A stretch of DNA of 64,000 nucleotides from the sequence record NC_023719.1. The stretch is one strand, 5' to 3'. Each line of letters starts with the position of its first letter. Positions within the stretch are counted from its first letter, which is position 1. The notes beneath the pieces are model-generated. The model saw only the letters and a program-made list of their open reading frames with translations, did no database searches and had not been told where the DNA came from. Below, in pieces: positions 4,754 through 39,631 of the stretch. The translations under genes were made by a program, and so were the position numbers.

Positions 4754-5851
4754 TTGAGTAGAATTAAAAAAATTAATAATAATAAAAGTCAATCTCTAGA
4801 TTATACTTTAAATGTAGATAATAATGAAGAGTATGGTAATAATGTGGATCCTGAAATTGATTGGACAACTGATGTTGACCTTCAAATGGATCCATCGAAA
4901 AATGATTATAATAAGGGGTATACTATGGATCCATATCAAATGAGATATTATGCTAATAGAAATATATTGCATGAAGTTAAAGCCGGTGAAAACTACGCTA
5001 CAATAGCTGAAAAATACTTTGGACATAAAAATTATGCTAGTAAGTTAGTAGAAATGAATAATGAGTTATCTAATAAAATCTTGAAGCCTGGCATGATGCT
5101 AATTGTAGGCAAAAAACCAGCAAAGGTTGCAGCGAAAGAAGTTAGAGATATCACTTATACTTCTGATAATTTAGCAAAGGAAATTATCACAATTTGGAGT
5201 CAAGTAGATGGACCTCTTCAAGATTTCTTTAATGCATTTACAATGAATAAAATGACAAATGAAATGAAGCAGCAGATAGCAAGTACTCTGAATGAATGGG
5301 GTTACAATGTAATCCCGCATTTAGAAGATAGAACTCCAAGATATGCAGCTAAGAAAGAATTGTTTAATAAGATTGCTAAAATATCTAAAGAGAAAAACAT
5401 GAAAAGAGTTTTCTCTGAATTAAACAACATCTGTCCTGATTCAAAAGTTGTATCTTCAATTTTAAGAGATATTGAAGAATTAAGTCAAAATGGAGTTATT
5501 GTTAAGAAGGCAGAAGCTCAAGGTTTAGTTGATTATTTTAAACAAATTTTCCCTGATGATTACGCTGTATCGTTGGTTGATATAACTCTTAATAAACCTA
5601 ATACTAGTTTTGAAGAATTTGATGAAAACCAAGAAATTTCAGATGAAGCTTTAGATCAAATGGAAAAAATGGATAGTGGTAATCAAGACCCAATGAGTAA
5701 ATCACCAAATGACGGCGGTTTAAACGGTTATGATTTCACTACTCACATGAGATCTGATGGTCCGGGTGGAGTTGCACCTACATCATTTGAAACTGGGCCA
5801 TTTAATGTATATAGAGCGAGCGTTAAAAATACTCGCTTAAAAAAAAAGTAA
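4754..5851 (+). CDS. LysM-domain putative virion protein
   Basis: LysM HEVKAGENYATIAEKYFG...LKPGMMLIV; start moved from 4706 to TTG 4754 (RBS GGAGGT, MSRIKK); ends at an A9 run plus TAA. Confidence 0.7.
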   Translation: MSRIKKINNNKSQSLDYTLNVDNNEEYGNNVDPEIDWTTDVDLQMDPSKNDYNKGYTMDPYQMRYYANRNILHEVKAGENYATIAEKYFGHKNYASKLVEMNNELSNKILKPGMMLIVGKKPAKVAAKEVRDITYTSDNLAKEIITIWSQVDGPLQDFFNAFTMNKMTNEMKQQIASTLNEWGYNVIPHLEDRTPRYAAKKELFNKIAKISKEKNMKRVFSELNNICPDSKVVSSILRDIEELSQNGVIVKKAEAQGLVDYFKQIFPDDYAVSLVDITLNKPNTSFEEFDENQEISDEALDQMEKMDSGNQDPMSKSPNDGGLNGYDFTTHMRSDGPGGVAPTSFETGPFNVYRASVKNTRLKKK

Positions 5852-5889
5852 CCGCTGATTCTATAGAAGATATTCCAGTTTATTTAGTT

Positions 5890-6240
5890 TTGGATGCACT
5901 TTCTAAAGCGTCGCATAATGTTTCTGATTTATTGAATAGAAAACTAGATGTTCCTCCAGTACCAATTGAAACAATTAGAAAACAAGATAACAACAAGGCG
6001 AGTGAAAATGAAAAAATACCTAGTGGGTATAGAATGCCTGTAAATATTGTTGAAGTTTATAGTATTTGGAAAATATTTGTTGAATATGAAAATAATGAAG
6101 TTAACGAAGCTTATGTAGTTATAAGTGCTGATAATATAATTGATGGTTACAAAAAAGGTGAATGGCAACGAGTAGAGTATCGTGGTTTTTATCTCACTTT
6201 TGAAGAAGCAAAAAATGAAATCAATGGATATTTGGAGTAG
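5890..6240 (+). CDS. Hypothetical protein; probably the -1-frame C-terminal extension of the LysM protein
   Basis: No RBS; its frame is open back through the A9 run at 5839-5847. Confidence 0.55.
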   Translation: MDALSKASHNVSDLLNRKLDVPPVPIETIRKQDNNKASENEKIPSGYRMPVNIVEVYSIWKIFVEYENNEVNEAYVVISADNIIDGYKKGEWQRVEYRGFYLTFEEAKNEINGYLE

Positions 6241-6286
6241 AAATTATCTTCTACTCCATAATAATTAAGGGCTAGGTGATATCAAA

Positions 6287-9523: not shown

Positions 9524-9931
9524 TTGACAAGGTTAAAAAAGATAAAACAGCTAGAAGGAAAAAGTTCAAGTAAATTGAGTAAAGTTGCAGCTGCAATGTA
9601 CGATATTGAAACTGAGATTCTGAATAGTGGAGATGCTATTGGCATTTCCGCTAGAACTGTAAATTGGAAGCCTTGGTTTCAAGTATACATAGAATACGGA
9701 ACTGGAACAAGTTCTTTCTATGATGGTCCCGACGCTGATAGAGCTTTTGGTGTTTATAAAGATTTACTTTTAGCATTTAAAGGAGTCAAGGCAGCTGAAA
9801 ATTTTGCTAAAAATATATCTAAATATGAAAAGCAATTAGAAATGTTTACGAATTCACCGGGAAACAAGGGATTAGACAATTATTATCATAACTTATTATT
9901 AAAAAGACCAAGTTTCTTAGGGTATTTCTAA
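9524..9931 (+). CDS. Hypothetical head-associated protein (MTRLKK tag)
   Basis: TTG start after SD-like GGCGGTGA; N-terminal RLKK...KVAA. Confidence 0.55.
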   Translation: MTRLKKIKQLEGKSSSKLSKVAAAMYDIETEILNSGDAIGISARTVNWKPWFQVYIEYGTGTSSFYDGPDADRAFGVYKDLLLAFKGVKAAENFAKNISKYEKQLEMFTNSPGNKGLDNYYHNLLLKRPSFLGYF

Positions 9932-9951: not shown

Positions 9952-10170
9952 ATGAAAAAATCCAGATTAAAGAAGGTTTCGTTTGATGGTGGTGGAGGTA
10001 ATCCAGCTGGTGGAGATTTCCCAATGCCAATTCTTTTAAATGGCCCAATGGAAAAAGTTGACAATAAAGATGAAATCAATCAAGTAACTTTTGGACCATC
10101 TATTTCAAGAGAATGGTTATTTGAAAAACCTCTGGATAATCCCGAGTGGAGTTTAAGGAGTTCTGATTAA
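9952..10170 (+). CDS. Small hypothetical head-associated protein (MKKSRLKKVS tag)
   Basis: RBS GAGGTG; tag motif. Confidence 0.55.
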   Translation: MKKSRLKKVSFDGGGGNPAGGDFPMPILLNGPMEKVDNKDEINQVTFGPSISREWLFEKPLDNPEWSLRSSD

Positions 10171-11565: not shown

Positions 11566-11922
11566 ATGAGTAGAAAAAGACGTTTAATAAGTCAATATGA
11601 TAATAATATGAATGATATGGACTTTTTAATGAGTTTAGATCCTGATTTAAGAGAATATTTTGATGACGGTAATCGATTATTAAAGACAAAATCGACTAAG
11701 AAGAAAAGAAAGAAAAAGGCCAGCTTCACAATCGGAGATCAAGTTGAAGTAAATGATTCATATGGTACAGTAATATTTGGTCCATATGAATCAGAAACTG
11801 GTAAAGATACTTATGAAATTGAATGTGAAGACGGTTCTATAGTTACATCAGAAGATGATGGTGTTTCAATTAAAGTATATGTAGCTCCAATTGAAGAACC
11901 AGAAAAAGATGATTTATTATAA
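11566..11922 (+). CDS. Hypothetical protein with SH3/KOW-like domain
   Basis: RBS AAGGAG; FTIGDQVEVNDSYGTV beta-barrel-like segment after KKAS. Confidence 0.5.
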   Translation: MSRKRRLISQYDNNMNDMDFLMSLDPDLREYFDDGNRLLKTKSTKKKRKKKASFTIGDQVEVNDSYGTVIFGPYESETGKDTYEIECEDGSIVTSEDDGVSIKVYVAPIEEPEKDDLL

Positions 11923-11936
11923 ACGGAGTTGTTATT

Positions 11937-12203
11937 ATGAAACGTTTAATTAGCAAAACCGCTGCACGTTATGCTGCTTCAGGTGAGATGGAAAAACTAA
12001 TTGGCTACTTAGTTACAAGAAGTTCTGGTTTAAGATTAGAAAAACAACATTTTGATGATATTATCGAGCATTTTAATGAGAATGGCGGAAGTTTAAAAGG
12101 TATACAAGGTAAAGAAAAAGAAGATAAAGGTTTTTATTATGAAAAGCTTCATAACTCTATAGATAAGATTTTGAAAAAACACAAACTAAAAAATAAAAAT
12201 TAA
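11937..12203 (+). CDS. Small hypothetical head-associated protein (MKRLISKTAA tag)
   Basis: RBS CGGAG; tag motif. Confidence 0.55.
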   Translation: MKRLISKTAARYAASGEMEKLIGYLVTRSSGLRLEKQHFDDIIEHFNENGGSLKGIQGKEKEDKGFYYEKLHNSIDKILKKHKLKNKN

Positions 12204-12335: not shown

Positions 12336-14282
12336 GTGAGTGATCGTATCATCACGAATTTTACAGAAAAAGATTTCCAAATGGCTAAGCAAGCAGCATC
12401 AAAACCTAATGGCATGTCTAATAACCATGGCGGCGGAAGTTTGATGCGTAGTGCGTTGTTACAAGATAAGAACGGTTTACCTAAAAATATACAAAGAAAA
12501 ATGGCTTCCCCTTCAGTAGGTATGGGTAATATATCTATGGGTAACCCAAGTTTCTATCACCCAGTATTCCAAAACATGAACATCATGTTGCCACGTGATA
12601 GACGCGAAAGAAATGAATGGTGTAGACATTTCTATAGAACAGAACCAATTATAGCTACTTCATTAGATCTTCATACAGAATTCCCGATTTCAGATTTTAA
12701 CAATGTTGTATCTGATGATGGGATTAAAGAGTTTTTTGATTACATGGCATTTGAAAGATTAGACTTAGTTAATTTATTGTTAGATATTGGTTTGGAGTAT
12801 TGGAAATTAGGAGATGTATTCCCATTTGGTCAATTAAATGAACAAGACGGTATGTGGGAAAGATTTGTTATTTTAAATCCTGACTATGTTGACATAAAAG
12901 CATCTATATTAGCTGGTGATCCAGTTATTGAATTAATACCTGACGAAACTGTAAAAGCTATTATTGATGCTGGTCCTCGTGGCGATTACTCTAGTATTTA
13001 TAGTCAATTCCCAGAGGATGTAGTGAGACAAGTGAGAATGGGAAGAAACATTAGACTTGATAATAGATTAGTTTCTCACATTGCTCATAAAGCGTCTCAA
13101 TATGAGACTTGGGGAACTCCAATTATGATGCGTTGTTTCAAAACTTTAATCTATAAAGACAAACTAAGAGAAGCTCAAAACGCAATTGCGAGTAGACATG
13201 TTACTCCATTAAGGATATTCAAAGTTGGCGCACCAGGTGAACCTATGCCTTCGCAAGAAGATTTAGATTCTTTACGTGATACTTTAATCCAAGCTGATGA
13301 TGATCCAAACTTCATGCTTGTATATCACTATGCATTACAAACTGACTATGTAGGTTCTGCTGGTAGAATTTTACCATTAAACCAAGAATTTGATTTCATT
13401 CAAAAAGAGCTTATGAACGGTTTAGGCATTAACCAAGCTATGTTAAACGGTGAAGGTCCAACATATTCAAATGCTCAAGTTGGTATGGATGCATTAGCTA
13501 GAAGATACATGTCATATCGTTTAAGATTAGAGTCTTGGATTAGACAAAAAGTTTATAGACCAATTTCTGAAATACAAGGTTTTTATAAACCTACAAATGG
13601 CACTGTCGCAAGAAGATACTTAAGTTCAAAAGAACAAAGAAAACTTGCTGATAGAAAAGAAATGCAATTAATTGTTCCTGAGATTTCTTGGAGTCAACAA
13701 GATTTAACTTCAAATCAATCTGTTCTTAACTTTATTCAACAATTACAATCTAAGGGACTTGTTTCTATGAGCACGATATTACCAATGCTTAAACTTGACC
13801 CAGAAACAGAGCGTAAAAATCTTGAGCAAGAACGTGGTTCTGTATTTGATACTAATGCTCCTAAAGCACCAAGCGGTGGAGGCGCACCTGGAGGACCTAG
13901 TGGTGGAGCACCAAAACCTCCAACAACGCCTGACAGCCCTGGCCCTAATAATGGAAATAAACCGGGCGGGCCACCAACGCCAGGTGGGCCAAAAGGAAAT
14001 GATGCGCCGGGTAAAGCTGATCCAAGTTCATTTGGATTCCCAGGTAAAGGCGCTCCTCCTGAAAACAAAGCTCCATCGCCAAATGATAAGAGTCAAGGTG
14101 ACAGTCCAGCTCCTACACCATCGTCTGCACCTACGCCACCACCAGTTGGACCAAAGCACTCTAGTTTATCGGATTTTTTAGCAAAAGACGGGGTTCAAAA
14201 AGAAGAGAAGATAGCGTCTATGGACTCCCGTTCTTCAGTAAAAGTCAGACGCTATCAGAAGGAAGACAAGACGGAGAAATAA
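12336..14282 (+). CDS. Portal protein with Pro/Gly-rich C-terminal tail
   Basis: Position between terL and protease; YRTEPIIATSLDLHTEFP and FGQL..W..F..LNPD portal-like segments. Confidence 0.8.
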   Translation: MSDRIITNFTEKDFQMAKQAASKPNGMSNNHGGGSLMRSALLQDKNGLPKNIQRKMASPSVGMGNISMGNPSFYHPVFQNMNIMLPRDRRERNEWCRHFYRTEPIIATSLDLHTEFPISDFNNVVSDDGIKEFFDYMAFERLDLVNLLLDIGLEYWKLGDVFPFGQLNEQDGMWERFVILNPDYVDIKASILAGDPVIELIPDETVKAIIDAGPRGDYSSIYSQFPEDVVRQVRMGRNIRLDNRLVSHIAHKASQYETWGTPIMMRCFKTLIYKDKLREAQNAIASRHVTPLRIFKVGAPGEPMPSQEDLDSLRDTLIQADDDPNFMLVYHYALQTDYVGSAGRILPLNQEFDFIQKELMNGLGINQAMLNGEGPTYSNAQVGMDALARRYMSYRLRLESWIRQKVYRPISEIQGFYKPTNGTVARRYLSSKEQRKLADRKEMQLIVPEISWSQQDLTSNQSVLNFIQQLQSKGLVSMSTILPMLKLDPETERKNLEQERGSVFDTNAPKAPSGGGAPGGPSGGAPKPPTTPDSPGPNNGNKPGGPPTPGGPKGNDAPGKADPSSFGFPGKGAPPENKAPSPNDKSQGDSPAPTPSSAPTPPPVGPKHSSLSDFLAKDGVQKEEKIASMDSRSSVKVRRYQKEDKTEK

Positions 14283-27099: not shown

Positions 27100-27108
27100 G
27101 GTCACTAT

Positions 27109-27432: not shown

Positions 27433-27499
27433 ATTATTTGATTCACTTAAGTTATTAAATATTTGTAGTGATAATTCTACGCAAAATTAAAGATGATAG

Positions 27500-27823: not shown

Positions 27824-27847
27824 GATAGAAGAGGAGCAGTTTTTGAG

Positions 27848-28126: not shown

Positions 28127-28131
28127 TTATA

Positions 28132-28167
28132 TGTACTACTGATTTTAATAATCAGTAGTATTTTTTT
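28132..28167 (+). terminator. Rho-independent terminator
   Basis: TACTACTGAT-tttaata-ATCAGTAGTA plus T run. Confidence 0.8.
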
Positions 28168-28217
28168 ATGAAAAAATAGTATTAATAAAAGAATGAAGTT
28201 AATAAAAGGAGAGTTTT

Positions 28218-28733
28218 ATGAAGAGATTAATTAAGAAAGCTTCGGTCTATGATGTTCCTGAGGAATTTTTATTTTATTGGTGTTCAAGTCCAAGTGATAT
28301 AAAATATAATTATCCAGAATCTATAGAAAAGATAGCTAATGAAAATACAGATTGTATTTTTAGTGGTGATGCTTATAGATATATTGAGTTACCTAATTTC
28401 GAGTATCAAGATAAAGAAATAGATCAATTACTTAAAGAAGCATGGGATGAAGTACAAACAGTCGAGAAGTATAGTTCATTCGCTTCATCAAAAAGAGGCG
28501 TAGAGCATTTTATTACAACTGATTATAGAAGTTTTGGAATTATTATTGAAGCGAATGTTAGCGGGATTGATATAAAGAAACTAACAAATAAGTATCGCGA
28601 TACTGTAGATGAACAAGTTTTCGAATACGCTGATACAGAAGATGAAATAGTGACTTTGGATGTTGTTGATTCTTGGGATATAGCTGCAATAGTTATTGAA
28701 GAAGAGGTAGAGTGGATTCAGAGTGATATTTAA
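28218..28733 (+). CDS. Putative R-S-E-class ADP-ribosyltransferase-like protein with MKRLIKKAS tag
   Basis: AYR (Arg), YSSFASS (S-x-S), GIIIEA strand and EDEIV (E-x-E) in the expected order. Confidence 0.55.
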   Translation: MKRLIKKASVYDVPEEFLFYWCSSPSDIKYNYPESIEKIANENTDCIFSGDAYRYIELPNFEYQDKEIDQLLKEAWDEVQTVEKYSSFASSKRGVEHFITTDYRSFGIIIEANVSGIDIKKLTNKYRDTVDEQVFEYADTEDEIVTLDVVDSWDIAAIVIEEEVEWIQSDI

Positions 28734-28762
28734 GAAGGTATGATAAAATACCTTCTTTTTTG
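28732..28762 (+). terminator. Rho-independent terminator
   Basis: AAGAAGGTAT-gataa-ATACCTTCTT plus T run. Confidence 0.8.
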
Positions 28763-28838
28763 TTGGAATCACTTTTTGTTAAATACAGTTGACTATTTAA
28801 TTAATATATAACAACATAATAAAGAAGGAGGACATCAT

Positions 28839-29879
28839 ATGATAGAAGAAGATGATTTGCTTGATGATTATGAGTTTCTTTCAAATAGAGAGAAAATTAC
28901 ACAGCGTCAATTTGAGTATTTGGTCCACTTAGTTGATTACTTTGATTTAGGTATGCATGAAAGAATGCTTGTATTTAATTATTTAATCGATAAACACAAG
29001 ATGATAGCTCACTTAACGAAAAATGAAGCAACAATTATTATTTCGCATTTAGAGGATTTAAAGAAAAAGCATAAATATAGTGCCTCATTCGCAAGAAAAG
29101 TTTTACTAGATGAGGTAGAAAAAAAGGTAGGAACAAAGAAAGTAGAAAAAACAAATGAAAGTGTTAGTGGAGTTAGAGAAACTGAAGAAACTAAAGTTGT
29201 TAATGAAAAGGAGAATTCTACAATGAAATTTAAAAACTTGTTCGGTGGAGAAATTGGTAAAGACAAATCTGGTATGTTTAAAATGTCTGCTTTAGGTTTA
29301 GCGGTAAAAAATGAAGAAGGTAATTACGTTTGTTATAATGGATCTAATATGGTAGATGTTTTAGACATGACGGTAGATATGGACAACATCGTGTATAAGA
29401 TTCCAGTGCAAAAAGTTGAAAAAGGTGATCTTATTATGTCTAATGGAAAGCCTGTATACGTTAAAAAGGTTAATGGTAATGAGTTAACAGTGTTTAATCC
29501 TTTTAACAATCGAAAAGAAAGTTACATTCCGCAAACAAATTTATTTGGATTTAACTTCTTCATTAAAGTTGTCAGCTTATTTGATCTTAGTAAACCAACC
29601 GATGGAAGCCAAGGTATGACATTCAATCCTATGTTCTTAGCTTTCGCTGACCGTGAAGAAGGCGATAAAAACGATATGTCTGAAATAATGATGATGAGCA
29701 TGATGATGCAAGGTGGAAATCAACAAAACAATCAATTTAACAATATGCTGCCATTTATGATGATGAGTAAGGGTGAAAATTCTAACTTAATGGAAATGAT
29801 GATGATGCAACAAATGATGGGTGGTCAAGGTTTTAACTTTAACCCATTCAATCAACCAGTTGATAACAACGAACAATAA
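28839..29879 (+). CDS. Hypothetical protein with Met/Gln/Asn-rich C-terminus; possible internal start at 29223
   Basis: RBS AGGAGG; internal AAGGAG 9 nt before in-frame ATG 29223 (MKFKNLF). Confidence 0.6.
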   Translation: MIEEDDLLDDYEFLSNREKITQRQFEYLVHLVDYFDLGMHERMLVFNYLIDKHKMIAHLTKNEATIIISHLEDLKKKHKYSASFARKVLLDEVEKKVGTKKVEKTNESVSGVRETEETKVVNEKENSTMKFKNLFGGEIGKDKSGMFKMSALGLAVKNEEGNYVCYNGSNMVDVLDMTVDMDNIVYKIPVQKVEKGDLIMSNGKPVYVKKVNGNELTVFNPFNNRKESYIPQTNLFGFNFFIKVVSLFDLSKPTDGSQGMTFNPMFLAFADREEGDKNDMSEIMMMSMMMQGGNQQNNQFNNMLPFMMMSKGENSNLMEMMMMQQMMGGQGFNFNPFNQPVDNNEQ

Positions 29880-29895
29880 TTTGATCATTGATTGT

Positions 29896-29925
29896 AGGCG
29901 CAGATAAAATCTGCGCCTTTATTTT
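29896..29925 (+). terminator. Rho-independent terminator
   Basis: AGGCGCAGAT-aaa-ATCTGCGCCT plus T-rich tail. Confidence 0.75.
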
Positions 29926-29985
29926 ATTAGAGAATAGAAGAGTAAAAAAAAGATGCTATAATGATTATTATTTAATAAATGAAAG

Positions 29986-30255
29986 GTGGTTTTTGGAATG
30001 AACAACGAACAACATAAAGATGTAGGTAAATACAATAAAGAAGTAAAAGGTAAAAAAGCTGTTTTAAAAGAAGAGGTTTTTTTCTACACAGGTTATCATC
30101 GTACTGAAAAAACTAAAAAGACTTTTAAAGCTGGTACAACTATTACTGCTGCGCATGAAGTTATTGGTACTGGTTTAACAACATTTGATTTTAAATGTAA
30201 TAAACAAGTTTTCCAACATGTCTTACGTAAAGATAAATTTGAATATATAGATTAA
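29986..30255 (+). CDS. Hypothetical protein
   Basis: ORF; true start may be ATG 29998. Confidence 0.5.
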   Translation: MVFGMNNEQHKDVGKYNKEVKGKKAVLKEEVFFYTGYHRTEKTKKTFKAGTTITAAHEVIGTGLTTFDFKCNKQVFQHVLRKDKFEYID

Positions 30256-30274
30256 GATGTTGGAGGTTTAACTC

Positions 30275-30634
30275 TTGGAAAAAATTAATGAGGAAATAGA
30301 TTCTTTTTTAGTATTACTAATTTTAAGCGAGGAAGAAGAAAAGGAATTTTCAAAATATTACAAATACCACAATGATGTAAACAGTTACTTGTATTTTTAT
30401 TATGATTCACATGCTTTTTTAACTATTAAAAAATCAGTAGGGTTCTTCTTAAAAGAAAATAAATATATCATTGAGTTTAAACCAACTCTGAATTTACATT
30501 TTGATGTTAATATAGGAAAATCACTAAAGTCTTTAGGTTTTGATCATTTGATAACTATGGAAAGAGGAATCATTTTCAACACTCCCGAAGAATGTGTAGA
30601 TTTTTTAAAGGAATTCCTTGAAAAAATGATATAA
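30275..30634 (+). CDS. Hypothetical protein
   Basis: TTG start after GGAGG. Confidence 0.5.
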   Translation: MEKINEEIDSFLVLLILSEEEEKEFSKYYKYHNDVNSYLYFYYDSHAFLTIKKSVGFFLKENKYIIEFKPTLNLHFDVNIGKSLKSLGFDHLITMERGIIFNTPEECVDFLKEFLEKMI

Positions 30635-30651
30635 GAGAGGGGAAACGAATT

Positions 30652-31110
30652 ATGCCACATATGAAGTTTTTTCAACAAGTAGCAGATATACAAAATCATC
30701 TTGAAAAAGTAATTGATGCCTTTCATGAAGAGAAATTTTTCTTATTAGAAAGTTGGGGTATTGATAAATCTGAGAGAATAGCTAATATTCTAGAAGAAAT
30801 AGAGGTTTGCAGATATATTATAGGTTGCCGATTAAGTATAGTAAGAAAGAATAATGTTAAAAAGCCTTCTTATGAAGCTGTTTCACGTTGTTTTAATCGC
30901 CATTTATATTTCTTAGAAAAAATCCATAGAGTCAAGCCAAATTCAAGATATCCTTCTTCTGATTATAGATATCATGTAACTAAAGAAGCAAAAGCATGTA
31001 AACATTATTTATTTAAATTCAGTTTACCAGCTTGGGTTGATAAGTTGCCTGAAGAAATATTAACTTATGAAAACAAATACCCTAATCATAAAGAAAGATG
31101 GGGAAGTTAG
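30652..31110 (+). CDS. Hypothetical protein
   Basis: RBS GAGGGG; long ORF. Confidence 0.55.
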   Translation: MPHMKFFQQVADIQNHLEKVIDAFHEEKFFLLESWGIDKSERIANILEEIEVCRYIIGCRLSIVRKNNVKKPSYEAVSRCFNRHLYFLEKIHRVKPNSRYPSSDYRYHVTKEAKACKHYLFKFSLPAWVDKLPEEILTYENKYPNHKERWGS

Positions 31111-31764
31111 ATGTTAGAGAATAAAAATGAGGAAGAATTAATAGCAATAAAAGATAAATACTTAGATGAAGTACGAGATTTACAAAGATTAATAGATGAA
31201 AAGAGAAAATCAATAAGAGAAATTGATGAACAATTACAAAGAAAACACGTTTGGTATGTCTATGATGTAGTTAGCACTATGTTAGAGCAATTAGAATTAA
31301 ACAAGAATAGAATTTCTGATAATTCTTATTGGCTTTTACAAAGAGAAATAAAATCATTGTTATTAACTAATGCTACTGATAGTAAATTTTATAAACGTGG
31401 GAAAATAGTTAAGAATATTTATTTTAATTTCAAAAGCTTAATTGTAATGAAATTGTCAGAATATGATTTAATTACTAAAAGATTTACCTATAGTCCTGTT
31501 TATAGATTTCAATTTAGTTTTGATGAGTTAAATAATAAAATTGATAGAAAATTCACATCTAATATTTTTTCAAAGCATTCAAAAAGGTTTTGTGATTTCG
31601 TTGTACCAATTGAGAATTTATCAGGTATGAATAAAGAAGTAATTAAATTAACAAAATCAAAGTATGATGATTATAAAGATATTATGAATGATATAATATT
31701 GGTTACGCAATATATTGAGAATGAAATGGAAGCTAGATTTTTAGCTTGCAAATTGAATCAATAA
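31111..31764 (+). CDS. Hypothetical protein with N-terminal coiled coil
   Basis: ORF abutting the previous stop. Confidence 0.5.
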   Translation: MLENKNEEELIAIKDKYLDEVRDLQRLIDEKRKSIREIDEQLQRKHVWYVYDVVSTMLEQLELNKNRISDNSYWLLQREIKSLLLTNATDSKFYKRGKIVKNIYFNFKSLIVMKLSEYDLITKRFTYSPVYRFQFSFDELNNKIDRKFTSNIFSKHSKRFCDFVVPIENLSGMNKEVIKLTKSKYDDYKDIMNDIILVTQYIENEMEARFLACKLNQ

Positions 31765-31776
31765 AAGGGTGATTAA

Positions 31777-32298
31777 ATGGCTAGAAAAAACATTAAAGTA
31801 GATTTTGGTTATCAGGAAGACAATACATTTAAGGGATCTGTTTTTATAGTTGATAAGTTTGAAGATTCTATCAATTGTCATTTAGAAAGAATTATTAAAA
31901 CATTAGATGAAAGAGATTTTGAAAAAGTTGTCTTATACCCTTTACATGAAAATACATTAAAAAGAATGAATATAGATGTAAGTAAAAAATATTTTTCAAG
32001 GTTAGATGACTTGGAAAATTTAGTTAGTAATGTTAAAACATATATTCCAGTTAGTATAGATAAATTAGATGGAAAAAGAAAGAAATACACTCCATTGGAT
32101 TTTATTTTAAATCACTTAACTGAAAAACATAAAAAACCATATTTTGTTTGTCTATCAAAAGATATTGCTAATAAATTTGCAAGTTATTCTTCGTTCGATA
32201 CTTGGATTAAAGAAGTTAGATTAATAATAGCTGAAGATGTTACATTAGCTTTACACAAAAATTTAGAGAAAAATTCAAAAAGAATTGAATTTATTTGA
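31777..32298 (+). CDS. Hypothetical protein, possibly a degenerate nucleotidyltransferase (Rossmann-like) fold
   Basis: VVLYPLHE..LKRM, GKRKKYTP, FASY..F..WIK pattern; looks host-like. Confidence 0.4.
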   Translation: MARKNIKVDFGYQEDNTFKGSVFIVDKFEDSINCHLERIIKTLDERDFEKVVLYPLHENTLKRMNIDVSKKYFSRLDDLENLVSNVKTYIPVSIDKLDGKRKKYTPLDFILNHLTEKHKKPYFVCLSKDIANKFASYSSFDTWIKEVRLIIAEDVTLALHKNLEKNSKRIEFI

Positions 32299-32400
32299 AA
32301 TGGGAATATTTATATTTATTCCCATTCTTTTTTATTTTATTTAAATTTAGTTCACTATATAATAATAATATTAACTATAGGAGTTGAAAGGAGAATTAAA

Positions 32401-32793
32401 GTGGAATGGTTGAATGAACCGGATTTTCTGGAATGGGATTTTCATAATATGCATTGTTTGATAATAAGAAATGATCTTGGAGTTCTTTGTGGATATGTAG
32501 GTATAAGCAAAGAACACGAATTGTATCAAACTAATTATTGTAAGTTTAAAGTTCACGGAGGTATTTCTTTTACTGGTAATGATGTGGCGGGAATGAAAGG
32601 AGATTTATTTTATTTTGGATTTGATTGTGCTCGCGCCAGAGATTTAATTCCAAAATTTGAAACATTTAATATTAATTTTATTGATGATGGAGGGTTTAAA
32701 ACTTATAGAAATATAGAATACGTAAAAGAACATGTAAAAAATCTTGCATATCAATTGCATTATAGAACTTATATTATTGACGAGTTGTTGTAG
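32401..32793 (+). CDS. Conserved phage hypothetical protein (CGYVG/VHGG/GFDC family)
   Basis: LCGYVGI, VHGGISF, GFDCA motifs. Confidence 0.65.
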   Translation: MEWLNEPDFLEWDFHNMHCLIIRNDLGVLCGYVGISKEHELYQTNYCKFKVHGGISFTGNDVAGMKGDLFYFGFDCARARDLIPKFETFNINFIDDGGFKTYRNIEYVKEHVKNLAYQLHYRTYIIDELL

Positions 32794-32803
32794 GGGGTAT
32801 TTT

Positions 32804-33106
32804 ATGTCATCATTCGAACATATTACTATTTGTCCAATATGTCAATCTGAATTAAGCAAACAAATATGGACTGGTGAAGGATGGTTAGAAGAACTATATT
32901 TAAGGTGTGAGAATAAATGTTTTTATTACAGCTTCTCATATGGAGATACTAGAATTAGTGTTTTTGATAAAGAGGTAGAGTATAGTTATAATGAAAAAGA
33001 TAAGAGTGGTAAAGAAAAAATAGTTGAAAAAATGATTAAATATTGGAAAGAAAATGATAGATATTTAGCTAAGTTGATAAAGGGGATTAGTGATGAAGAA
33101 AGTTGA
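32804..33106 (+). CDS. CPIC...YWKENDRYL family protein, copy 5
   Basis: CPICQ..CENKC..VFDK..YWKENDRYL; start moved to ATG 32804 (RBS AGGGGG). Confidence 0.65.
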   Translation: MSSFEHITICPICQSELSKQIWTGEGWLEELYLRCENKCFYYSFSYGDTRISVFDKEVEYSYNEKDKSGKEKIVEKMIKYWKENDRYLAKLIKGISDEES

Positions 33107-33290
33107 AGAATATACAGAAATAATGTGGGAAGTAGTATTTTTAGATTCAAAGGGTAAACTAATTGACCTTTGGGGAAACACTGAAAATGAAGATGAAATA
33201 GAACTTTTAAAAGAAAGAGCTATGAAAAAGGGGTATGATTGTATGGAAGTTAGTAAAATAACAAAAGAAGCAAAGAGATATAAATTATAA
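33090..33290 (+). CDS. Hypothetical protein
   Basis: RBS AAGGGG. Confidence 0.5.
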   Translation: MMKKVEEYTEIMWEVVFLDSKGKLIDLWGNTENEDEIELLKERAMKKGYDCMEVSKITKEAKRYKL

Positions 33291-33341
33291 TTTTAAACGT
33301 ATATCTAACTGCCAGACAAAAAAGAAAGAAGGTAGATAGAT

Positions 33342-33755
33342 ATGATGAATTTCATAAAGAAATCACTTGGATTATTAAATGCCGCCGAGGGATTTATTCA
33401 TATTTTTATTGCATGTATCGGGTTTTGGGGAATTTTCGCTACAGGCATTTATGATTGGAGAATTATTTCAGCGCCAGCTATTAATTTAGTTCTTGGAGTG
33501 TTTTCAATTTTTACAGGATACATTTTATTATACGATAAGGTTGGCATACTGAAAAAGATATTAGCAATTTTAAACACTCTTGAGGGTATTATCCATATAG
33601 TTGTAGCTCTTATTGGTTATTGGGGAATTTTTGCATATATGGTATTTGATTGGAGAATTTGGGCTACGCCAACAGAGCACTTATTTTTTGGGTTATTCTC
33701 AATTTTAACGGGATATATACTTGGTAAAAATCACCATCACCATCATCACCATTAA
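33342..33755 (+). CDS. Internally duplicated multi-TM membrane protein with C-terminal His7
   Basis: Two ~65-aa repeats (EG.IH..G.WG..DWR); ends NHHHHHHH. Confidence 0.7.
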   Translation: MMNFIKKSLGLLNAAEGFIHIFIACIGFWGIFATGIYDWRIISAPAINLVLGVFSIFTGYILLYDKVGILKKILAILNTLEGIIHIVVALIGYWGIFAYMVFDWRIWATPTEHLFFGLFSILTGYILGKNHHHHHHH

Positions 33756-33763
33756 ATCAAATA

Positions 33764-33802
33764 GAAGGTAGAAAAGGTAAAATATCTTTTTCTACCTTTT
33801 TT
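33764..33802 (+). terminator. Rho-independent terminator
   Basis: AAGGTAGAAAAG...CTTTTTCTACCTT plus T run. Confidence 0.7.
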
Positions 33803-33893
33803 TAATTTCTGTTTAAACTATCATCATTAAATAATTAATATATAGTATATGACATTAAAGAATCGAAACAATAAATATGGGGAGAGTGAAATT

Positions 33894-34085
33894 ATGGCAA
33901 GAAAAATTAAAATCATTCGTAGAGCCGACATTGAGAAAGAGTATGAAAGAATGTTGAAATTAGAGTTGGATTATGAATTAGCTTCTTTGTTTTCCGCAAT
34001 GAATGAAAAAAATGAAGTTGACATTGAAAAAAGCAAAAAACGTCTAACTGAAATACAAATGGATTTAGAAAGTTTAAAAGTTTAG
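33894..34085 (+). CDS. Small helical protein, host-like
   Basis: Start moved to ATG 33894 (RBS GGGGAG); LELDYELASLF helix pattern. Confidence 0.5.
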   Translation: MARKIKIIRRADIEKEYERMLKLELDYELASLFSAMNEKNEVDIEKSKKRLTEIQMDLESLKV

Positions 34086-34096
34086 AAGGTGAAAAT

Positions 34097-34516
34097 ATGT
34101 GGGTAGATCCAAAAAGTTTAGAAGAAAATAAAGTGTTGATTAGCACTCTATTATCTGAACTTGATAAAGGCAATAATAAGAGAGCTAAGAAACTCGTAGA
34201 TCATTTACTTGAAAAGAATTGGACAGTTAATATTAATTACATTGAACAAGAAAAAAAGAAAAGAAAAATCAAAAACTTAGATGTTGATTTTGAAGCTATA
34301 CTCTTAGGTAAATTCAAGGGTGACTATCATTTAACTACAAAGTGTAAGAAATACGTAGTAAGAATAACTAGTCAGAGGGCTGTCTTTTGGAAAATGGAAA
34401 AGTGGGTTAAATTAGGGGAATTTTTATTTGAAGATATTGAATTAACAGAAAAAGGCATTAAAGTTGGAATTGTAAAGATAGAGGTAGATGACAATGAACA
34501 AGAAACGGGAAGTTGA
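34097..34516 (+). CDS. Hypothetical protein
   Basis: RBS AAGGTG. Confidence 0.5.
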   Translation: MWVDPKSLEENKVLISTLLSELDKGNNKRAKKLVDHLLEKNWTVNINYIEQEKKKRKIKNLDVDFEAILLGKFKGDYHLTTKCKKYVVRITSQRAVFWKMEKWVKLGEFLFEDIELTEKGIKVGIVKIEVDDNEQETGS

Positions 34517-34826
34517 ATTGATATTAGAAAAGAAAAATCCTAATTTCTTCGAAATCTATTTTTTTGCTAAAAAGTTTAAATTGCCGCAAAAGAAATATGA
34601 TACTTATCCCCATATTCATATGAATAATAAGACAAATGATGTTATGGTTGATTTTAATATACTTCTTACAGTTTCTTATAGAGAGAGTTCAAATATATAC
34701 CGCATTTTTGGTGGAACATTTAGTCTTGCATATCCAAGTGAAGTATCTAGAGAAGAACTTGATTTTTGGTTACCTAGACTAGTTATTGAAAGTGAAAAAT
34801 TTATTTTAAAAAATAATCTTAGTTAG
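34494..34826 (+). CDS. Hypothetical protein
   Basis: RBS GAGGT; start moved to ATG 34494. Confidence 0.5.
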   Translation: MNKKREVELILEKKNPNFFEIYFFAKKFKLPQKKYDTYPHIHMNNKTNDVMVDFNILLTVSYRESSNIYRIFGGTFSLAYPSEVSREELDFWLPRLVIESEKFILKNNLS

Positions 34827-34834
34827 GAGAAAGT

Positions 34835-35068
34835 ATGATGTCTTTAATAACAGAAATCAATATTAAAGTAACTGGTGACTATTTACGAGGGACAATTAAA
34901 AATGATAAGTATTTAACTAATAATCTTATCTTACCACCAAGTATGGAAAGAAATAAACCGGAATTTGGATTAAATGTTATGCAAATAAGAAACATTATTA
35001 AAGAGTTAGAAGAATTAGCAGATTTAATGGATAGTTCAAATATAGCAAATACGTTAAAAAATAATTAA
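34835..35068 (+). CDS. Hypothetical protein
   Basis: RBS AGGAG. Confidence 0.5.
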   Translation: MMSLITEINIKVTGDYLRGTIKNDKYLTNNLILPPSMERNKPEFGLNVMQIRNIIKELEELADLMDSSNIANTLKNN

Positions 35069-35077
35069 ATTATTTTA

Positions 35078-35108
35078 AAAGGGACAATAAAAATTGTCTC
35101 TTTTTTTA
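35078..35108 (+). terminator. Rho-independent terminator
   Basis: AAAAGGGACAAT-aaaa-ATTGTCTCTTTT plus T run. Confidence 0.8.
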
Positions 35109-35180
35109 TTTTTTGTAATAAATCTCGTTAATTAAGTCTATTCTTTTATATAGTGGAACCAAATAGGAGGATTTATAGAT

Positions 35181-36314
35181 ATGAAACGTTTAGTAAAAGC
35201 TGAACAACAGAGTAGTACTATCAAATTAATGCATGGTACATCTAGTAAATTAGCTGAATCTATTTTTGAAAACGGTCTTTTACCGCAAGGATTGACTGAT
35301 ACAAAAATGTTTAATTATAGTGATTATGGTAGAGAAGGCGACGCAAGACATATTGAATGCGTATATTTAACTGATGATTTAGAAAATGCTGTTAGATACG
35401 CTAACAATGCTGTTAAACATAAGGGAGGATTTCCTTTAATTTTCGAAGTGGAAGTTGAGAAATCTGCTTTAACATGGGATGACGATGCTTTTTATAAAAA
35501 CTATGGCGATTTTGATTTTGGAGAAAAAGATGAAGAGTCTGGTACTTGGATCAAAAAACCATCTAAGCAATTGTGGGAACAATCATTAACTATCAATAAT
35601 CAATGTGCTCATTATGGCAAAATTGAAAGAGACAGTTTTAAAAGAATTAACTTAAATTCAAAATGGATCAATATTTATAATTTTATTAGAATTTACAATA
35701 GCTACGATAAGATGAATTTAAAACCAGAGTTGTTAAAAGAAAAAGAAGAATATTACTACAAAGAATTTAGTTTAGAAATAGACGATAATTTAAAATTAAT
35801 GGCTTCGATTATTGACAGAAATATATTTTTGTACAATTTAGAAATCGTAAAATCGCTTGATAAATTCGAAAAACAAGCTTTTTCATTGATCTTAATGGAA
35901 TTTTTAAAGGACAATTTGAAAGAATTTGGAGCTAAAATTTTCTATACTTCAGATTTTAAATCATTAAATTTCAATCCAAAAATTTCTAGTTTAAACTACG
36001 CTTTTGGTAGATTTGAAATAAATAGTTTAGAAAGCATACTTGATCACGTACAATTACGAATTCAACGTATGGATGAAGACTCTATAATGATGTCGAAGAT
36101 AGTTAATTGCGAAGCTTCTGAAGAAGAATTTGACTTAATTTATGAGTATAGCATTGATTTCTCTGGAGATTTAATCGAATTCTGCGAAAAATCTTTACAA
36201 ATGGATAATGATTCTATTCTTGATGTTTTAAAAAGAGTTAAACATCAGTATAACGATGCGTATAACGAGTTAGATGCTGAAATCGAATACTTATTGTATA
36301 GAGATCATAAATGA
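35181..36314 (+). CDS. H-Y-class ADP-ribosyltransferase-like domain protein with MKRLVKA tag
   Basis: LMHGTS...I...GL.P; VYLTDD...A..YA; LIFEVEV; RBS AGGAGG. Confidence 0.65.
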   Translation: MKRLVKAEQQSSTIKLMHGTSSKLAESIFENGLLPQGLTDTKMFNYSDYGREGDARHIECVYLTDDLENAVRYANNAVKHKGGFPLIFEVEVEKSALTWDDDAFYKNYGDFDFGEKDEESGTWIKKPSKQLWEQSLTINNQCAHYGKIERDSFKRINLNSKWINIYNFIRIYNSYDKMNLKPELLKEKEEYYYKEFSLEIDDNLKLMASIIDRNIFLYNLEIVKSLDKFEKQAFSLILMEFLKDNLKEFGAKIFYTSDFKSLNFNPKISSLNYAFGRFEINSLESILDHVQLRIQRMDEDSIMMSKIVNCEASEEEFDLIYEYSIDFSGDLIEFCEKSLQMDNDSILDVLKRVKHQYNDAYNELDAEIEYLLYRDHK

Positions 36315-36932
36315 TTTGAAAATCTTAAATGGTTGATTTCTCCCAGTTTCTTTATTAGTTTGACATGCTATTAGATTATTATTTAAGTAAGCTAATAAAA
36401 TGCTCTATGAAATAAATGGTGAGAAGGATAAATTATTGAAAACCTCTAGAAAGTCATCTAGAAATTTAGATTTTTAAAATGAAATAGTTTGGAAATGATT
36501 TGATTAATGAAATTGAAATGTTAACTCTGTATTCACTAATTTCAGTCCATGATTCACAGAGTGCAGCTATAAATATAATTAATATTATTTATATTAGATT
36601 AATAAAAATAAGATATATAAAAATAAAAAGATATAAGAGATATGTTAGTGCTGCGCACACATTCTCTTCTTTTTATTTATTTTTAAAACATACTGATTTT
36701 TAATGAGTTATCAGTACTGAAAACCGTATCTAGAGATTATTTATTAGTGACATAATTTTAATTAGATACGCTTTTCTTTATATTTTTATGTTTATTAATG
36801 TATCATTAAAAAAACAACCTCAGATTGAAGATTTATGTATTTAAAAAGTAGTCAAGAAGATTGTTGTTTATCTACTTTTTTGTTAATGAATTTACGTATT
36901 CCCATTAAAATATAAAATGGGAGGTTGGTTAA

Positions 36933-37823
36933 GTGATGAATTCTAATTTTTTCGATGAAGTCCATGATTTTCAAAGGTTTGTAAGACAAAATGTAAAATT
37001 GTTGGGTAACTATTTAATTATTTCAGAACAATTATATATGAGAAATGATGAAACTGGAATACTTGATATGTTAGCCGTTGATAATGATTCTAAAGTATTA
37101 ACTATTATTGAAATTAAAAATGATATCACAACTGATAAAAATGTTTGGCAACCCATTCGTTATTACGATCTCGCTAAAAGAGGTGAAGATGATCTTAGAG
37201 AACTTCTTGTAAAGGCTTCCTCTAAATTTGATTATGATATACAGGAAATTGATTTAACTCCAAAATTATTGTTAGTGGTGCCTAAATGTAATTCTCAGCT
37301 GTTAAGAACTTTATCGTATTTTGGAGACATAGATTCAGAAGTTATTGAATTAACAAGAGATGTTAAAAAATATGGTGTTGAAATAAAGAAAGAGAGTTAT
37401 AAGCCGAGATCAATTTTTCACAAAGATGATCTAGTAAATGTACAAAAGAAGATTTCCCAAGAATGGAGTTTTGATGAATATTTAAAACACGGAATCAATA
37501 GTGATAAAGTTAATTTAGCAAAGAGAATATCTACTCAAATTCAATATCTTTTCAATGAGAAAGACATTAAATTTGATATATTCTTTAGTGAAACGAAAAT
37601 TACGATAACTAAAGATAAAAAAGTTTGGTTACATCTTTTTATTAAGAATAGGATACTTGATAATAAATTGACTATATCTTTTAAAACTCATAAAGATTGT
37701 GTTATTAATAAAAATGATTTTATATATAATTCATCAATAGAATCATTCACTATTCAGAAGAGCAGTATAAAGTTAACATTAATAGAAGCTTTATCACTAA
37801 ATGTATTTGAACGATATTTATGA
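36933..37823 (+). CDS. PD-(D/E)XK endonuclease (NucS/DUF91-like) with C-terminal extension
   Basis: EQL...GILDMLAVD...IIEIK; Q..RYY; RBS GGGAGG. Confidence 0.65.
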   Translation: MMNSNFFDEVHDFQRFVRQNVKLLGNYLIISEQLYMRNDETGILDMLAVDNDSKVLTIIEIKNDITTDKNVWQPIRYYDLAKRGEDDLRELLVKASSKFDYDIQEIDLTPKLLLVVPKCNSQLLRTLSYFGDIDSEVIELTRDVKKYGVEIKKESYKPRSIFHKDDLVNVQKKISQEWSFDEYLKHGINSDKVNLAKRISTQIQYLFNEKDIKFDIFFSETKITITKDKKVWLHLFIKNRILDNKLTISFKTHKDCVINKNDFIYNSSIESFTIQKSSIKLTLIEALSLNVFERYL

Positions 37824-37838
37824 AAGAGGTGTTTATTT

Positions 37839-38366
37839 ATGCCAATGAAAGCAAGAAAAATAACAACAACTGAGCTACGCTCAAAAACAATTGAAACACT
37901 AGAAGAAAGAGGTATTACACTTCACGATATTGCTGAAATTGTAGTCACTATCCAAAAGAGATATTCTCCAGATTTAACTATCGATGTGGCTATTCACAAC
38001 ATCTTAAGAGTCTTGCAAAAGAGAGAAGTATGCAATGCTATTTTAACAGGGTTAGCACTTGATAAATTAGCAGAACAAAATCTTTTACCCTCTCCAATAC
38101 AAGAAATTATCATGTCAGATGAACCACTATATGGCATAGATGAAGTTATACCACTTTCTATTATTAATATCTATGGTACAATTGGTTTTACTAGTTTTGG
38201 TTACTTAGATAAAGAAAAAATTGGTATCATTAAGAAGTTGGATGAAATGGAAGACACTGTTCATACTTTTGCTGATGACATTGTGTGTGCTATCGCAGCA
38301 GCTGCTGCAAGCCGAGTTGCTCATAGAAGTAGAGATATTGAGGATAATGTAGAAAAAGGTAGCTAA
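37839..38366 (+). CDS. Phosphatidylglycerophosphatase A family protein (YutG-like)
   Basis: KREVCNAILTG.ALD, DEPLYGIDE, FGYLDKEK.GII, HTFADDIV motifs. Confidence 0.85.
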   Translation: MPMKARKITTTELRSKTIETLEERGITLHDIAEIVVTIQKRYSPDLTIDVAIHNILRVLQKREVCNAILTGLALDKLAEQNLLPSPIQEIIMSDEPLYGIDEVIPLSIINIYGTIGFTSFGYLDKEKIGIIKKLDEMEDTVHTFADDIVCAIAAAAASRVAHRSRDIEDNVEKGS

Positions 38367-38446
38367 TTTTTTTTAAAAAAAAAATGATTATATTTTTTAA
38401 AAGGGTTCTTATATTCATCATGAATAACTCATGAAGGAGATTTACG

Positions 38447-38902
38447 ATGAAGAAATTTTCTAGGTTACAGAAAAAAGCAGCTGGAGTTCCAGTTGAGAAT
38501 CTATTAAATGATTTAAGTCAAAAAGGTTTAGATGCAAGTGCTGAAGGCGAAAAGATAACTGTAAGAAATGGTAACATTGAAGATTTTGCAGAAGTTTTGA
38601 AAAAATATAGAATGTTAGACGAGTATGGTTTCTTTTTGTATGGTGGTTTCCAATCAGATGGGACAGTTCTTATTTCAAATGAAGAAGTAAAAGATGCTGA
38701 GGTTCTTTTTACTTATTCTTACAATGGGTATGTTGATGTAGATTACACAGCGGATGAGCTTTTTAATCATCAAAGTATACAACTAAAAAGATTGGCGAGT
38801 AACTTTAATAAAGTTTTTGCTAATTTGGGTAATTGTGTATTTGCATTCCAAGATACAGAAATAGAATTCTTTGAGTTAAGTCGTATGATTAATCCATCTT
38901 AA
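38447..38902 (+). CDS. Hypothetical protein with MKKFSRLQKKAA tag
   Basis: RBS AAGGAG; own terminator; tag motif. Confidence 0.6.
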   Translation: MKKFSRLQKKAAGVPVENLLNDLSQKGLDASAEGEKITVRNGNIEDFAEVLKKYRMLDEYGFFLYGGFQSDGTVLISNEEVKDAEVLFTYSYNGYVDVDYTADELFNHQSIQLKRLASNFNKVFANLGNCVFAFQDTEIEFFELSRMINPS

Positions 38903-38910
38903 CAAAAGTA

Positions 38911-38939
38911 AAAAGAAGAGAATAACTCTTCTTTTTTTA
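38911..38939 (+). terminator. Rho-independent terminator
   Basis: AAAAAGAAGAG-aataa-CTCTTCTTTTT plus T run. Confidence 0.8.
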
Positions 38940-39022
38940 TTCACTAAAACTCATATGAAGTTCCGTTAAAAATAAACTGGCTTGTTTATATAATAAAAAT
39001 ATCACAGGAGGTAAAAGACAAG

Positions 39023-39631
39023 ATGAAAAAGAGACTTTTAAAGAAAATTTCAGCGCCTTCTTTAGAAAGAATCTTACCAGGTTACCCTAATGATTTCATA
39101 CATTCTGAAAAAGGTTTAGAAATAGTTAATGTTGATGATATTATTGGTATGAGTTTTAGCAGAGCTGATGAATATGATGATAACTTTCAACCTATTGGCG
39201 AACCAGATGATAGATGGAAAAGTTTACATGATAGAGCTTTACAGGAAGGTAATTTAGACTTCGCAGGACCTATCCATTTAGTTCAACAAAGTGGTGATAA
39301 TAAGTATTATGTTTATGATGATGGTAACCATAGGCTTTCAGTTGCTAAATTTCTCAATATCCCAACTCTTCAAGCTGTAGTTACGGTTTTGATTCCTAAA
39401 AACGATGAAATCGAAGCTGAAATAGAAGGAATAATGAAAGAAATAAAAAAACAAGAATCAATATTGAATCAACTAACAAAAGAGCAAAATAATCTATGGA
39501 ATGATGATTTATCTTTAGATGAAATTAATTTAAAGGTAGATGAAATAGAAGAAAAGAAAAAACCATTGTATGAAACGATAGATAATCTTTGGCTTAAATT
39601 AACAAATTATCAAAATAATTTAATAAATTAA
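39023..39631 (+). CDS. ParB/sulfiredoxin-like domain protein with MKKRLLKKIS tag
   Basis: PIHLVQ...YYVYDDGNHRLSVAK ParB-N motif; C-terminal coiled coil; RBS AGGAGG. Confidence 0.7.
   Translation: MKKRLLKKISAPSLERILPGYPNDFIHSEKGLEIVNVDDIIGMSFSRADEYDDNFQPIGEPDDRWKSLHDRALQEGNLDFAGPIHLVQQSGDNKYYVYDDGNHRLSVAKFLNIPTLQAVVTVLIPKNDEIEAEIEGIMKEIKKQESILNQLTKEQNNLWNDDLSLDEINLKVDEIEEKKKPLYETIDNLWLKLTNYQNNLIN

Follow-up and report, generated by a model that had tools for sequence, protein, structure and literature searches.

A portable eight-residue N-terminal peptide on head-module and dispersed proteins of phage G, a candidate capsid-targeting sequence

The window analysed here is identical (100%) to bases 1 to 64000 of GenBank JN638751, the genome of Bacillus phage G (now Lysinibacillus phage G), and encodes eleven proteins that begin with a similar short basic peptide, hereafter the tag, which is a candidate capsid-targeting sequence. 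Gene product (gp) numbers follow the JN638751 annotation, and gene calling retrieved 95 genes in the window and 665 in the whole genome. The original prediction had listed the eleven starts and their N-terminal peptides, and every one of them is present at its position. All eleven are also annotated coding sequence starts, namely those of gp5, gp9, gp10, gp12, gp13, gp17, gp20, gp38, gp53, gp56, and gp57. The first seven had been placed in the head module, and all seven indeed lie between the terminase and capsid protein genes, a region whose annotated products include the large terminase (gp1), a zinc peptidase (gp2), the portal (gp14), the decoration protein (gp26), and the major capsid protein (gp27). 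The eleven tagged genes and the untagged genes of gp2, gp14, gp19, and gp27 are all on the plus strand.

Within the head module, gp5 (4754 to 5851, 365 amino acids) presents the tag as MSRIKK (nucleotides 4754 to 4771) and contains a LysM domain (Pfam E value of 1.5e-5). gp9 (9524 to 9931, 135 amino acids) starts at a TTG codon with MTRLKK (9524 to 9541), and gp10 (9952 to 10170, 72 amino acids) starts with MKKSRLKK (9952 to 9975). The tag is degenerate in gp12 (11566 to 11922, 118 amino acids; MSRKRRLIS) and gp13 (11937 to 12203, 88 amino acids; MKRLISK), and canonical in gp17 (16055 to 16369, 104 amino acids; MKRLIKKS at 16055 to 16078, TTG start), which lies between the portal and protease genes. 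The seventh protein, the scaffold-like gp20 (17765 to 18253, 162 amino acids), has the tag …SRLKKTA (17765 to 17800), and its gene is located directly 3' of that of the prohead protease. The tail, shell, portal, protease, decoration, and terminase proteins all lack the tag. Among these, the portal gp14 (12336 to 14282) is identified by the annotation and a weak Pfam Portal_Mu match, and the prohead protease gp19 (16840 to 17742) by a match to PHROG 18299 (E value of 2.6e-19); the latter was named head maturation protease in a 2025 paper (PMC12484599). The major capsid protein gp27 (23289 to 24137) has an HK97 fold without a delta domain, preceded by an acidic N-arm, with the Pfam Phage_capsid match covering residues 27 to 280.

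The other four tagged genes of the window are dispersed, and the original prediction described each as a stand-alone unit with a strong ribosome-binding site after an intergenic gap, mostly bounded by a terminator, among neighbors without the tag. This description holds: the gaps of gp38, gp53, gp56, and gp57 measure 80 to 120 nucleotides, their Shine-Dalgarno matches extend over 6 to 7 bases, and the motif is absent from the neighboring proteins. gp38 (28218 to 28733, 171 amino acids), with the canonical tag MKRLIKKA, stands alone between two terminator-like hairpins (28133 to 28161 on the plus strand, and 28732 to 28757) and is a paralogue of another tagged protein, gp347. A further hairpin (35077 to 35104, plus strand) precedes gp53 (35181 to 36314, 377 amino acids), in which the variant MKRLVKAE is found directly before the H-G-T motif of a domain that resembles ADP-ribosyltransferases (ARTs) and PARP. 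gp56 (38447 to 38902, 151 amino acids; tag MKKFSRLQKKAA) is an ORFan followed by a terminator at 38910 to 38936, and the ParB/Srx-like gp57 (39023 to 39631, 202 amino acids) combines the tag MKKRLLKK with an invariant D-G-N-H-R motif. Hairpins of this kind are enriched between 24 and 41 kb, where 14 are found against 3.7 expected, one of them after gp58, and several small genes at 24000 to 41000, gp38 among them, stand as units of one gene with a terminator on either side. No common promoter element was found upstream of the tagged and structural genes, and sigma-70-like matches did not exceed those in shuffled sequence.

Two ART-like enzymes, one ParB/Srx-like protein, and one unknown had been proposed among these four. 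The ART-like assignment stands, at a weak level, for gp53 but not for gp38. gp53 matches Pfam PARP with an E value of 2.5e-4 and 21.1 bits, below the curated cut-off of 26.7 bits, and PHROG 13493 with an E value of 3e-18, and a search of 1.84 billion representatives retrieved 39 homologues, most of which conserve H-G-T; gp53 is putatively ART/PARP-like. The gp38 family conserves an arginine, an S-x-x-S, and an E-x-E in the order of R-S-E ARTs, but neither the single sequence nor the family profile matched Pfam or the PDB, the AF2 model is poor (mean pLDDT of 57), and Foldseek returned nothing for it, so that gp38 is only possibly an enzyme of this type. For gp57 the proposed relationship is supported by a profile match of its family (9 sequences) to gp284 in hhalign (E value of 8.7e-5 over 80 columns, at a probability of only 60%), gp284 itself matching Pfam ParB_N with an E value of 3e-9. 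The members of the gp38 and gp57 families gave no Pfam match, and PDB sequence searches with gp38, gp53, gp56, gp57, and gp19 gave none either. gp56 remains the unknown of the set, with no homologue among 5.8 billion proteins.

In its strict form, R-[L/I]-x(0,1)-K-K within the first 14 residues, the motif is present in 8 of the 95 called proteins of the window, and a looser form retrieves exactly the eleven listed genes; the interiors of the proteins contain 1 to 2 matches in 16,121 residues. Enrichment over background, which the original prediction called for, is borne out: the strict pattern occurs at 21 of the 665 N termini of the genome, whereas 2000 shuffles of the residues of each N terminus averaged 1.9 matches, with 8 as the highest count, and shuffled columns gave 1.6. 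Protein interiors genome-wide contain 16 matches in 126,175 residues. The N-terminal 4-mers most enriched in the genome are KRLI, RLIK, LIKK, SRLK, and IKKS, so that the motif emerges without an assumed pattern. The original count of at least eleven carriers proved an underestimate: inspection gives about 24, the 13 additional ones, all outside the window, being gp126, gp141, gp213, gp284, gp334, gp336, gp345, gp346, gp347, gp351, gp500, gp508, and gp610. These span positions 73330 to 447356 of JN638751, with gp345, gp346, and gp347 clustered, and carriers overall are scattered across 4.7 to 447 kb of the genome. Pattern matches at the annotated starts of gp214, gp244, and gp378 were judged false on inspection. 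The motif is unmentioned in the literature searched.

The consensus of the tag is the eight-residue sequence M-K-R-L-I-K-K-[A/S], with K-R-L as its core. Position frequencies were obtained from 85 nonredundant tagged N termini of phage G and its relatives, aligned on the arginine as position 0, which is residue 3 of the protein in 65 of the 85. Methionine occupies position −2 in 78%, and lysine (64%) or serine (20%) occupies position −1. The anchoring arginine is followed by leucine at +1 (95%), by isoleucine (46%), lysine (21%), or valine (12%) at +2, by lysine (81%) or arginine (15%) at +3, by lysine (56%) or alanine (12%) at +4, and by alanine (42%) or serine (27%) at +5, a preference that lay outside the search pattern. 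A P-E-x-aromatic pattern in several families was set aside as a cleavage site, as it resembles an ordinary helix cap.

Lysine-rich N termini are common in AT-rich genomes, and the motif could in principle be a by-product of A-rich codons that aid initiation, of a recombining nucleotide cassette, or of common descent. The codons are at odds with the first two of these: the arginine of the tag is encoded by AGA, CGT, CGA, CGC, or AGG in different carriers, the leucine by TTA, TTG, or CTT, and the lysine codons vary as well. The 60 bases upstream of the carriers have nothing in common except the ribosome-binding site, and the upstream DNA does not align. The varied codons and unrelated upstream sequences show that selection acts on the peptide, as do the exchanges of lysine and arginine around an invariant R-L in orthologues, and they led us to reject a nucleotide cassette or codon effect. 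Common descent draws on two small groups of paralogues, the only ones that all-against-all BLAST detects among the 24 carriers once the tags are removed. One comprises gp53, gp141, gp336, and gp610, whose tags are closely followed by H-G-T or H-H-T, and the other gp38 and gp347; the remaining carriers are mutually unrelated, and paralogy as the source of the motif was rejected because most carriers lack similarity after the tag. With an enrichment far above that in shuffled N termini, codon bias, a DNA cassette, and paralogy can all but be dismissed, and we give a by-product of any kind a very small probability.

The proposal that the tag is a portable element on mostly unrelated proteins is thus upheld by the scarcity of paralogues, and the homologues of gp53 support it from another side. 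In many of these the tag is missing and the first strand of the fold opens the protein, with H-G-T at residues 5 to 13, whereas in a subset the tag is prepended 8 to 10 residues upstream and H-G-T is moved to residues 14 to 19; homologues that begin at the fold identify the tag as an add-on. One tagged homologue is encoded on a contig of 23% GC, and one untagged homologue on a phage contig of 37% GC that carries no tags at all. The carriers belong to varied Pfam families: besides LysM (gp5) and the weak PARP match (gp53), these are ParB_N (gp284), SLOG (gp345), ferritin-like (gp346), and GNAT (gp508). gp334 is nucleoside deoxyribosyltransferase-like in Pfam and is also annotated as NUDIX, and gp141, gp336, and gp610 are ART-like carriers outside the window. 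NAD- and nucleotide-directed enzymes dominate this list. The analysis confirms the tag as a real, protein-level, and portable feature.

In IMG/VR, searches with the portal and the capsid protein led to metagenomic relatives of phage G, with identities of 60 to 84% for the portal and 74 to 92% for the capsid protein. Their orthologues of gp5, gp9, gp10, gp12, gp13, gp17, and gp20 keep the tag at overall identities of 25 to 60%, in variants that include SRLKK, SRLRK, KRLIRK, KRLVKA, and KRLVRA. The tag is kept in the gp5 orthologues of relatives L013 and L014; the gp9 orthologues start with SRLKR or SRLRK; and those of gp17 (L014, L018, L019, and L024) keep at minimum K-R-L. gp12, with its degenerate tag in phage G, has a canonical G-R-L-K-K in its L014 orthologue, and the gp13 orthologue of the same relative starts with MKRLMAK. 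Additional small tagged open reading frames (ORFs) lie between the portal and capsid genes of the relatives. Conservation extends to the dispersed carriers, since the tag is kept in the gp53 orthologues of L027 and L028, in the gp38 and gp334 orthologues of metagenomic relatives, and in seven of eight gp57 homologues (about 50% identity), the eighth record starting later. In more distant relatives mainly M-(x)-K-R-L is left. Locus scans with gp38, gp57, or gp2 as the single query found nothing beyond phage G and its nearest relative.

A search of IMG/VR for exact matches to DNA that codes for M-K-R-L-I-K-K-[S/A] retrieved 88 stretches. The soluble type of tag with a ribosome-binding site is confined to low-GC sequences, on contigs of 100 to 416 kb and a few short fragments, and several of these contigs also carry a G-type capsid gene. 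The other matches belong to a family of 82-residue membrane proteins on contigs of about 55% GC, to a family of 429-residue secreted lysins with a signal peptide, and to internal positions of integrases. In the membrane protein and lysin families the same eight residues are followed by a hydrophobic segment, and a test for Sec or lipoprotein signal peptides found no hydrophobic stretch after the tag in the G-type carriers, so that a signal peptide was rejected. As unrelated proteins share the same residues, the peptide alone is not diagnostic, and its context is.

Several observations connect the tag with the capsid. It is carried by 7 of the 26 genes from the terminase to the capsid protein and by 17 of the 649 genes elsewhere (Fisher P = 1.2e-5). 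One of the seven, gp20, occupies the usual place of the scaffold gene, directly after the prohead protease, and in its 9 orthologues (23 to 59% identity) only M1, R7, and L8 are invariant before position 30. In one of these, from a distant relative (L025, 17055 to 17624), two tags stand in tandem. The AF2 model of gp20 consists of coil at residues 1 to 15, which include the tag, a helical hairpin at residues 16 to 83 (pLDDT of >90), and a disordered acidic tail at residues 105 to 162; Foldseek with this model returned only generic helical hairpins, and the predicted build is scaffold-like. gp27 is the most conserved protein of the head module, 74 to 92% identical in the relatives. Comparison of its N-arm (encoded at 23289 to 23390 of the window) with those of relatives L013 to L139 gives a hint, and only a hint, that the charge of the tag tracks that of the arm across three clades: the segment E-T-E-E is accompanied by four basic residues in the tag, E-T-D-E by three, and E-T-N/S-E by two. 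The link between tag and capsid is circumstantial, and within that limit we think it somewhat likelier than its negation that the tag is, as originally proposed, a capsid-targeting sequence, a portable label that sorts proteins and is peculiar to phage G and its relatives.

As a capsid-targeting sequence, the label would tether gp20 and the small internal head proteins gp5, gp9, gp10, gp12, gp13, and gp17 to the interior of the procapsid, together with about 17 dispersed proteins, including the ART-like, ParB/Srx-like, ARC-Nudix, SLOG, GNAT, and ferritin-like ones. The tagged proteins would be enclosed in the capsid and later exit with the DNA. Being basic and partly hydrophobic, the label may bind an acidic, highly conserved surface, for which the acidic N-arm of gp27 and the acidic tail of gp20 are candidates. 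Procapsid binding, packaging, ejection, and any removal of the tag by gp19 or gp2 are what we infer from the genes. T4 packages an enzyme of this type, Alt. The proposal that other phages inject polyvalent proteins (PMC5512222; PMC7824862) offers a further precedent for cargo of this kind.

The sequence K-R-x-x-K-K is also a generic basic patch able to bind anionic lipids or nucleic acid, and the tag might direct proteins elsewhere in the infected cell, to the membrane, to the nucleoid or phage DNA, or to a phage-made replication compartment. Such a destination would suit the many carriers whose substrates are nucleotides, NAD, or DNA, and promoters of an early type are found before some carriers, gp508 and gp610 being preceded by near-consensus promoters of the host sigma-A type. 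The enrichment in the head module and the scaffold-like carrier speak against it. The invariant leucine after the arginine and the alanine or serine at +5 suggest contact with a specific protein partner more than a patch of charge, and the tag is not followed by a hydrophobic segment. Such a destination appears to us rather improbable, although it is still a live rival of capsid targeting, as are a degradation signal and a leader for the M16 peptidase.

ClpX recognizes N-terminal motifs that start with methionine, a basic residue, and a hydrophobic one, and phage G encodes a full ClpP (gp257; Pfam E value of 5e-61) and a full ClpX with a zinc-finger domain (gp258) at 187784 to 189744 of JN638751. 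Read by this ClpXP or by a host AAA+ protease, the tag would be an N-terminal degradation or unfolding signal that shortens the life of potentially toxic enzymes and removes scaffold-like proteins. Among the carriers are several enzymes that, if long-lived, might harm the cell. The tag matches published N-terminal ClpX motifs only approximately, however, and a degradation signal leaves its presence on seven head-module proteins unexplained, including the gene in the scaffold position, as it does the tandem tag of the gp20 orthologue. It seems to us a distinctly unlikely function. ClpP and ClpX are themselves listed by a published paper among the head maturation proteases found in particles.

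The zinc peptidase gp2 (1980 to 3212) raises another possibility. It belongs to the M16 (insulinase/MPP-like) family, with both M16 domains (Pfam PF00675, E value of 1.7e-33; PF05193, E value of 4.2e-37) and an intact H-x-x-E-H (H-F-I-E-H) zinc motif at residue 44. The gene adjoins that of the terminase, and orthologues are present in at least three relatives (L013, L014, and L017); an M16 enzyme is unusual in a phage morphogenesis region. M16B enzymes cut off basic, arginine-containing N-terminal presequences, and the tag is basic, free of acidic residues, built around an invariant arginine, and itself followed by alanine or serine. It could serve as a leader peptide for gp2, in the manner of mitochondrial presequences or RiPP leaders, and designate proteins for processing at the N terminus or for activation, whether or not the capsid is involved. 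The tag is nevertheless far shorter than known M16 substrates, and gp2 may instead clear scaffold fragments. We give the leader function a low probability; it is also compatible with capsid targeting rather than exclusive of it, and gp2 may be a candidate enzyme for removing the tag or clearing peptides.

Several points weigh against capsid targeting. Beyond the alanine or serine at +5, no conserved cleavage motif follows the tag among the 85 N termini, glutamate reaching only 18% at +6. In the ART-like carriers no more than about eight residues separate the tag from the fold, which leaves no room for a propeptide. The host-type promoters of gp508 and gp610 suggest that some carriers are synthesized early instead of late. 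The parallel between tag charge and N-arm charge comes from three related clades, which cannot separate co-variation from shared descent, and ClpXP or an M16 peptidase could read a short basic N-terminal signal as well. On the side of packaging, particle proteomics reportedly includes the ferritin-like gp346, the only carrier named in the text of the paper concerned (PMC12484599), but the same dataset also reports many replication enzymes, so that its specificity is doubtful and it has little weight.

A bolder version of capsid targeting, in which one universal label defines the whole protein content of the heads of G-like giant phages and docks the scaffold, the internal proteins, and some 17 effectors on the N-arm of gp27, as in encapsulin loading, possibly with M16 trimming to follow in parallel to mitochondrial import, we hold to be unlikely. 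Should the tag prove to be a capsid address even in the plainer form, one could tell directly from sequence which proteins are packaged and injected by the largest cultivated phage, and by its relatives that have not been cultivated. The injected proteome would center on NAD- and nucleotide-directed enzymes for host takeover or counter-defense, and a targeting principle like that of T4 would have arisen in a very different head lineage. The tag would also provide a minimal eight-residue handle with which to load foreign proteins into a T=52 capsid.

The window presents other features of note. gp3 (3213 to 3839, plus strand), annotated as a transcriptional regulator, has a helix-turn-helix of the sigma-70 region 4 or LuxR type; it is among the best-conserved genes of the head module (57 to 80% identity in the relatives) and may be a late-gene regulator. 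gp22 and gp23 (19865 to 21534, plus strand) are annotated as two versions of a single amidase-like gene, one short and the other joined from two pieces, which suggests a frameshift or an intervening sequence. Toward the end of the window, ten annotated tRNA genes (58584 to 60679) are followed by six tandem ORFs of similar size, 92 to 99 amino acids (61885 to 63668).

Among known systems, the giant phages phiKZ and SPN3US also have heads with many nonshell proteins that enter the host, and the N termini of these are processed by a prohead protease; their common element, however, is a cleavage motif rather than a label at the N terminus, and the propeptides are of considerable length and diversity. 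Mitochondrial presequences, the substrates of MPP, resemble the tag as basic, arginine-containing N-terminal signals without acidic residues on unrelated proteins, and in phage G an M16 peptidase is encoded alongside. They are amphipathic and 15 to 50 residues long, unlike the tag, and a connection between gp2 and the tag would be an assumption from gene content. In the P22 scaffolding protein, the basic residues of a small terminal helix-turn-helix bind acidic residues of the coat N-arm, and in the Dar proteins of phage P1, which counter restriction, an N-terminal segment suffices for loading into heads. Unlike an eight-residue consensus reused on many proteins, such elements are folded domains or segments of greater length, each specific to one protein.

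Encapsulin cargo-loading peptides share with the tag that a short terminal peptide is found on diverse enzymes, ferritin-like ones included, together with a shell of HK97 fold without a delta domain, and they dock cargo on the inner face of that shell. They are usually C-terminal and differ in sequence, the cargo genes lie beside that of the shell protein, and the shell packages no DNA. With its N-terminal label, dispersed genes, and T=52 head that packages a genome, the phage G system is not a member of this class and is comparable by analogy only.

The closest parallel is the capsid targeting sequence of T4, a short N-terminal peptide carried by the ADP-ribosyltransferase Alt and by internal head proteins of small size, as the tag is carried by head-module proteins and by the putatively ART-like gp53. 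In both phages a prohead protease and a scaffold core are encoded with the head genes, here gp19 and the scaffold-like gp20. For T4 the cargo is delivered with the DNA and the peptide can carry foreign proteins, as would be expected of the tag in phage G. The two differ in that the phage G capsid is of the HK97-type Phage_capsid family without a delta domain, its protease is not T4-like by sequence, and its peptide is unrelated and shows no glutamate-type cleavage consensus after it. Phage G further has about 24 carriers, many of them encoded far from the head genes. By analogy, the tag system of phage G would work most like the T4 capsid targeting sequence, with a short N-terminal peptide that assigns both internal head proteins and enzymes to the capsid.

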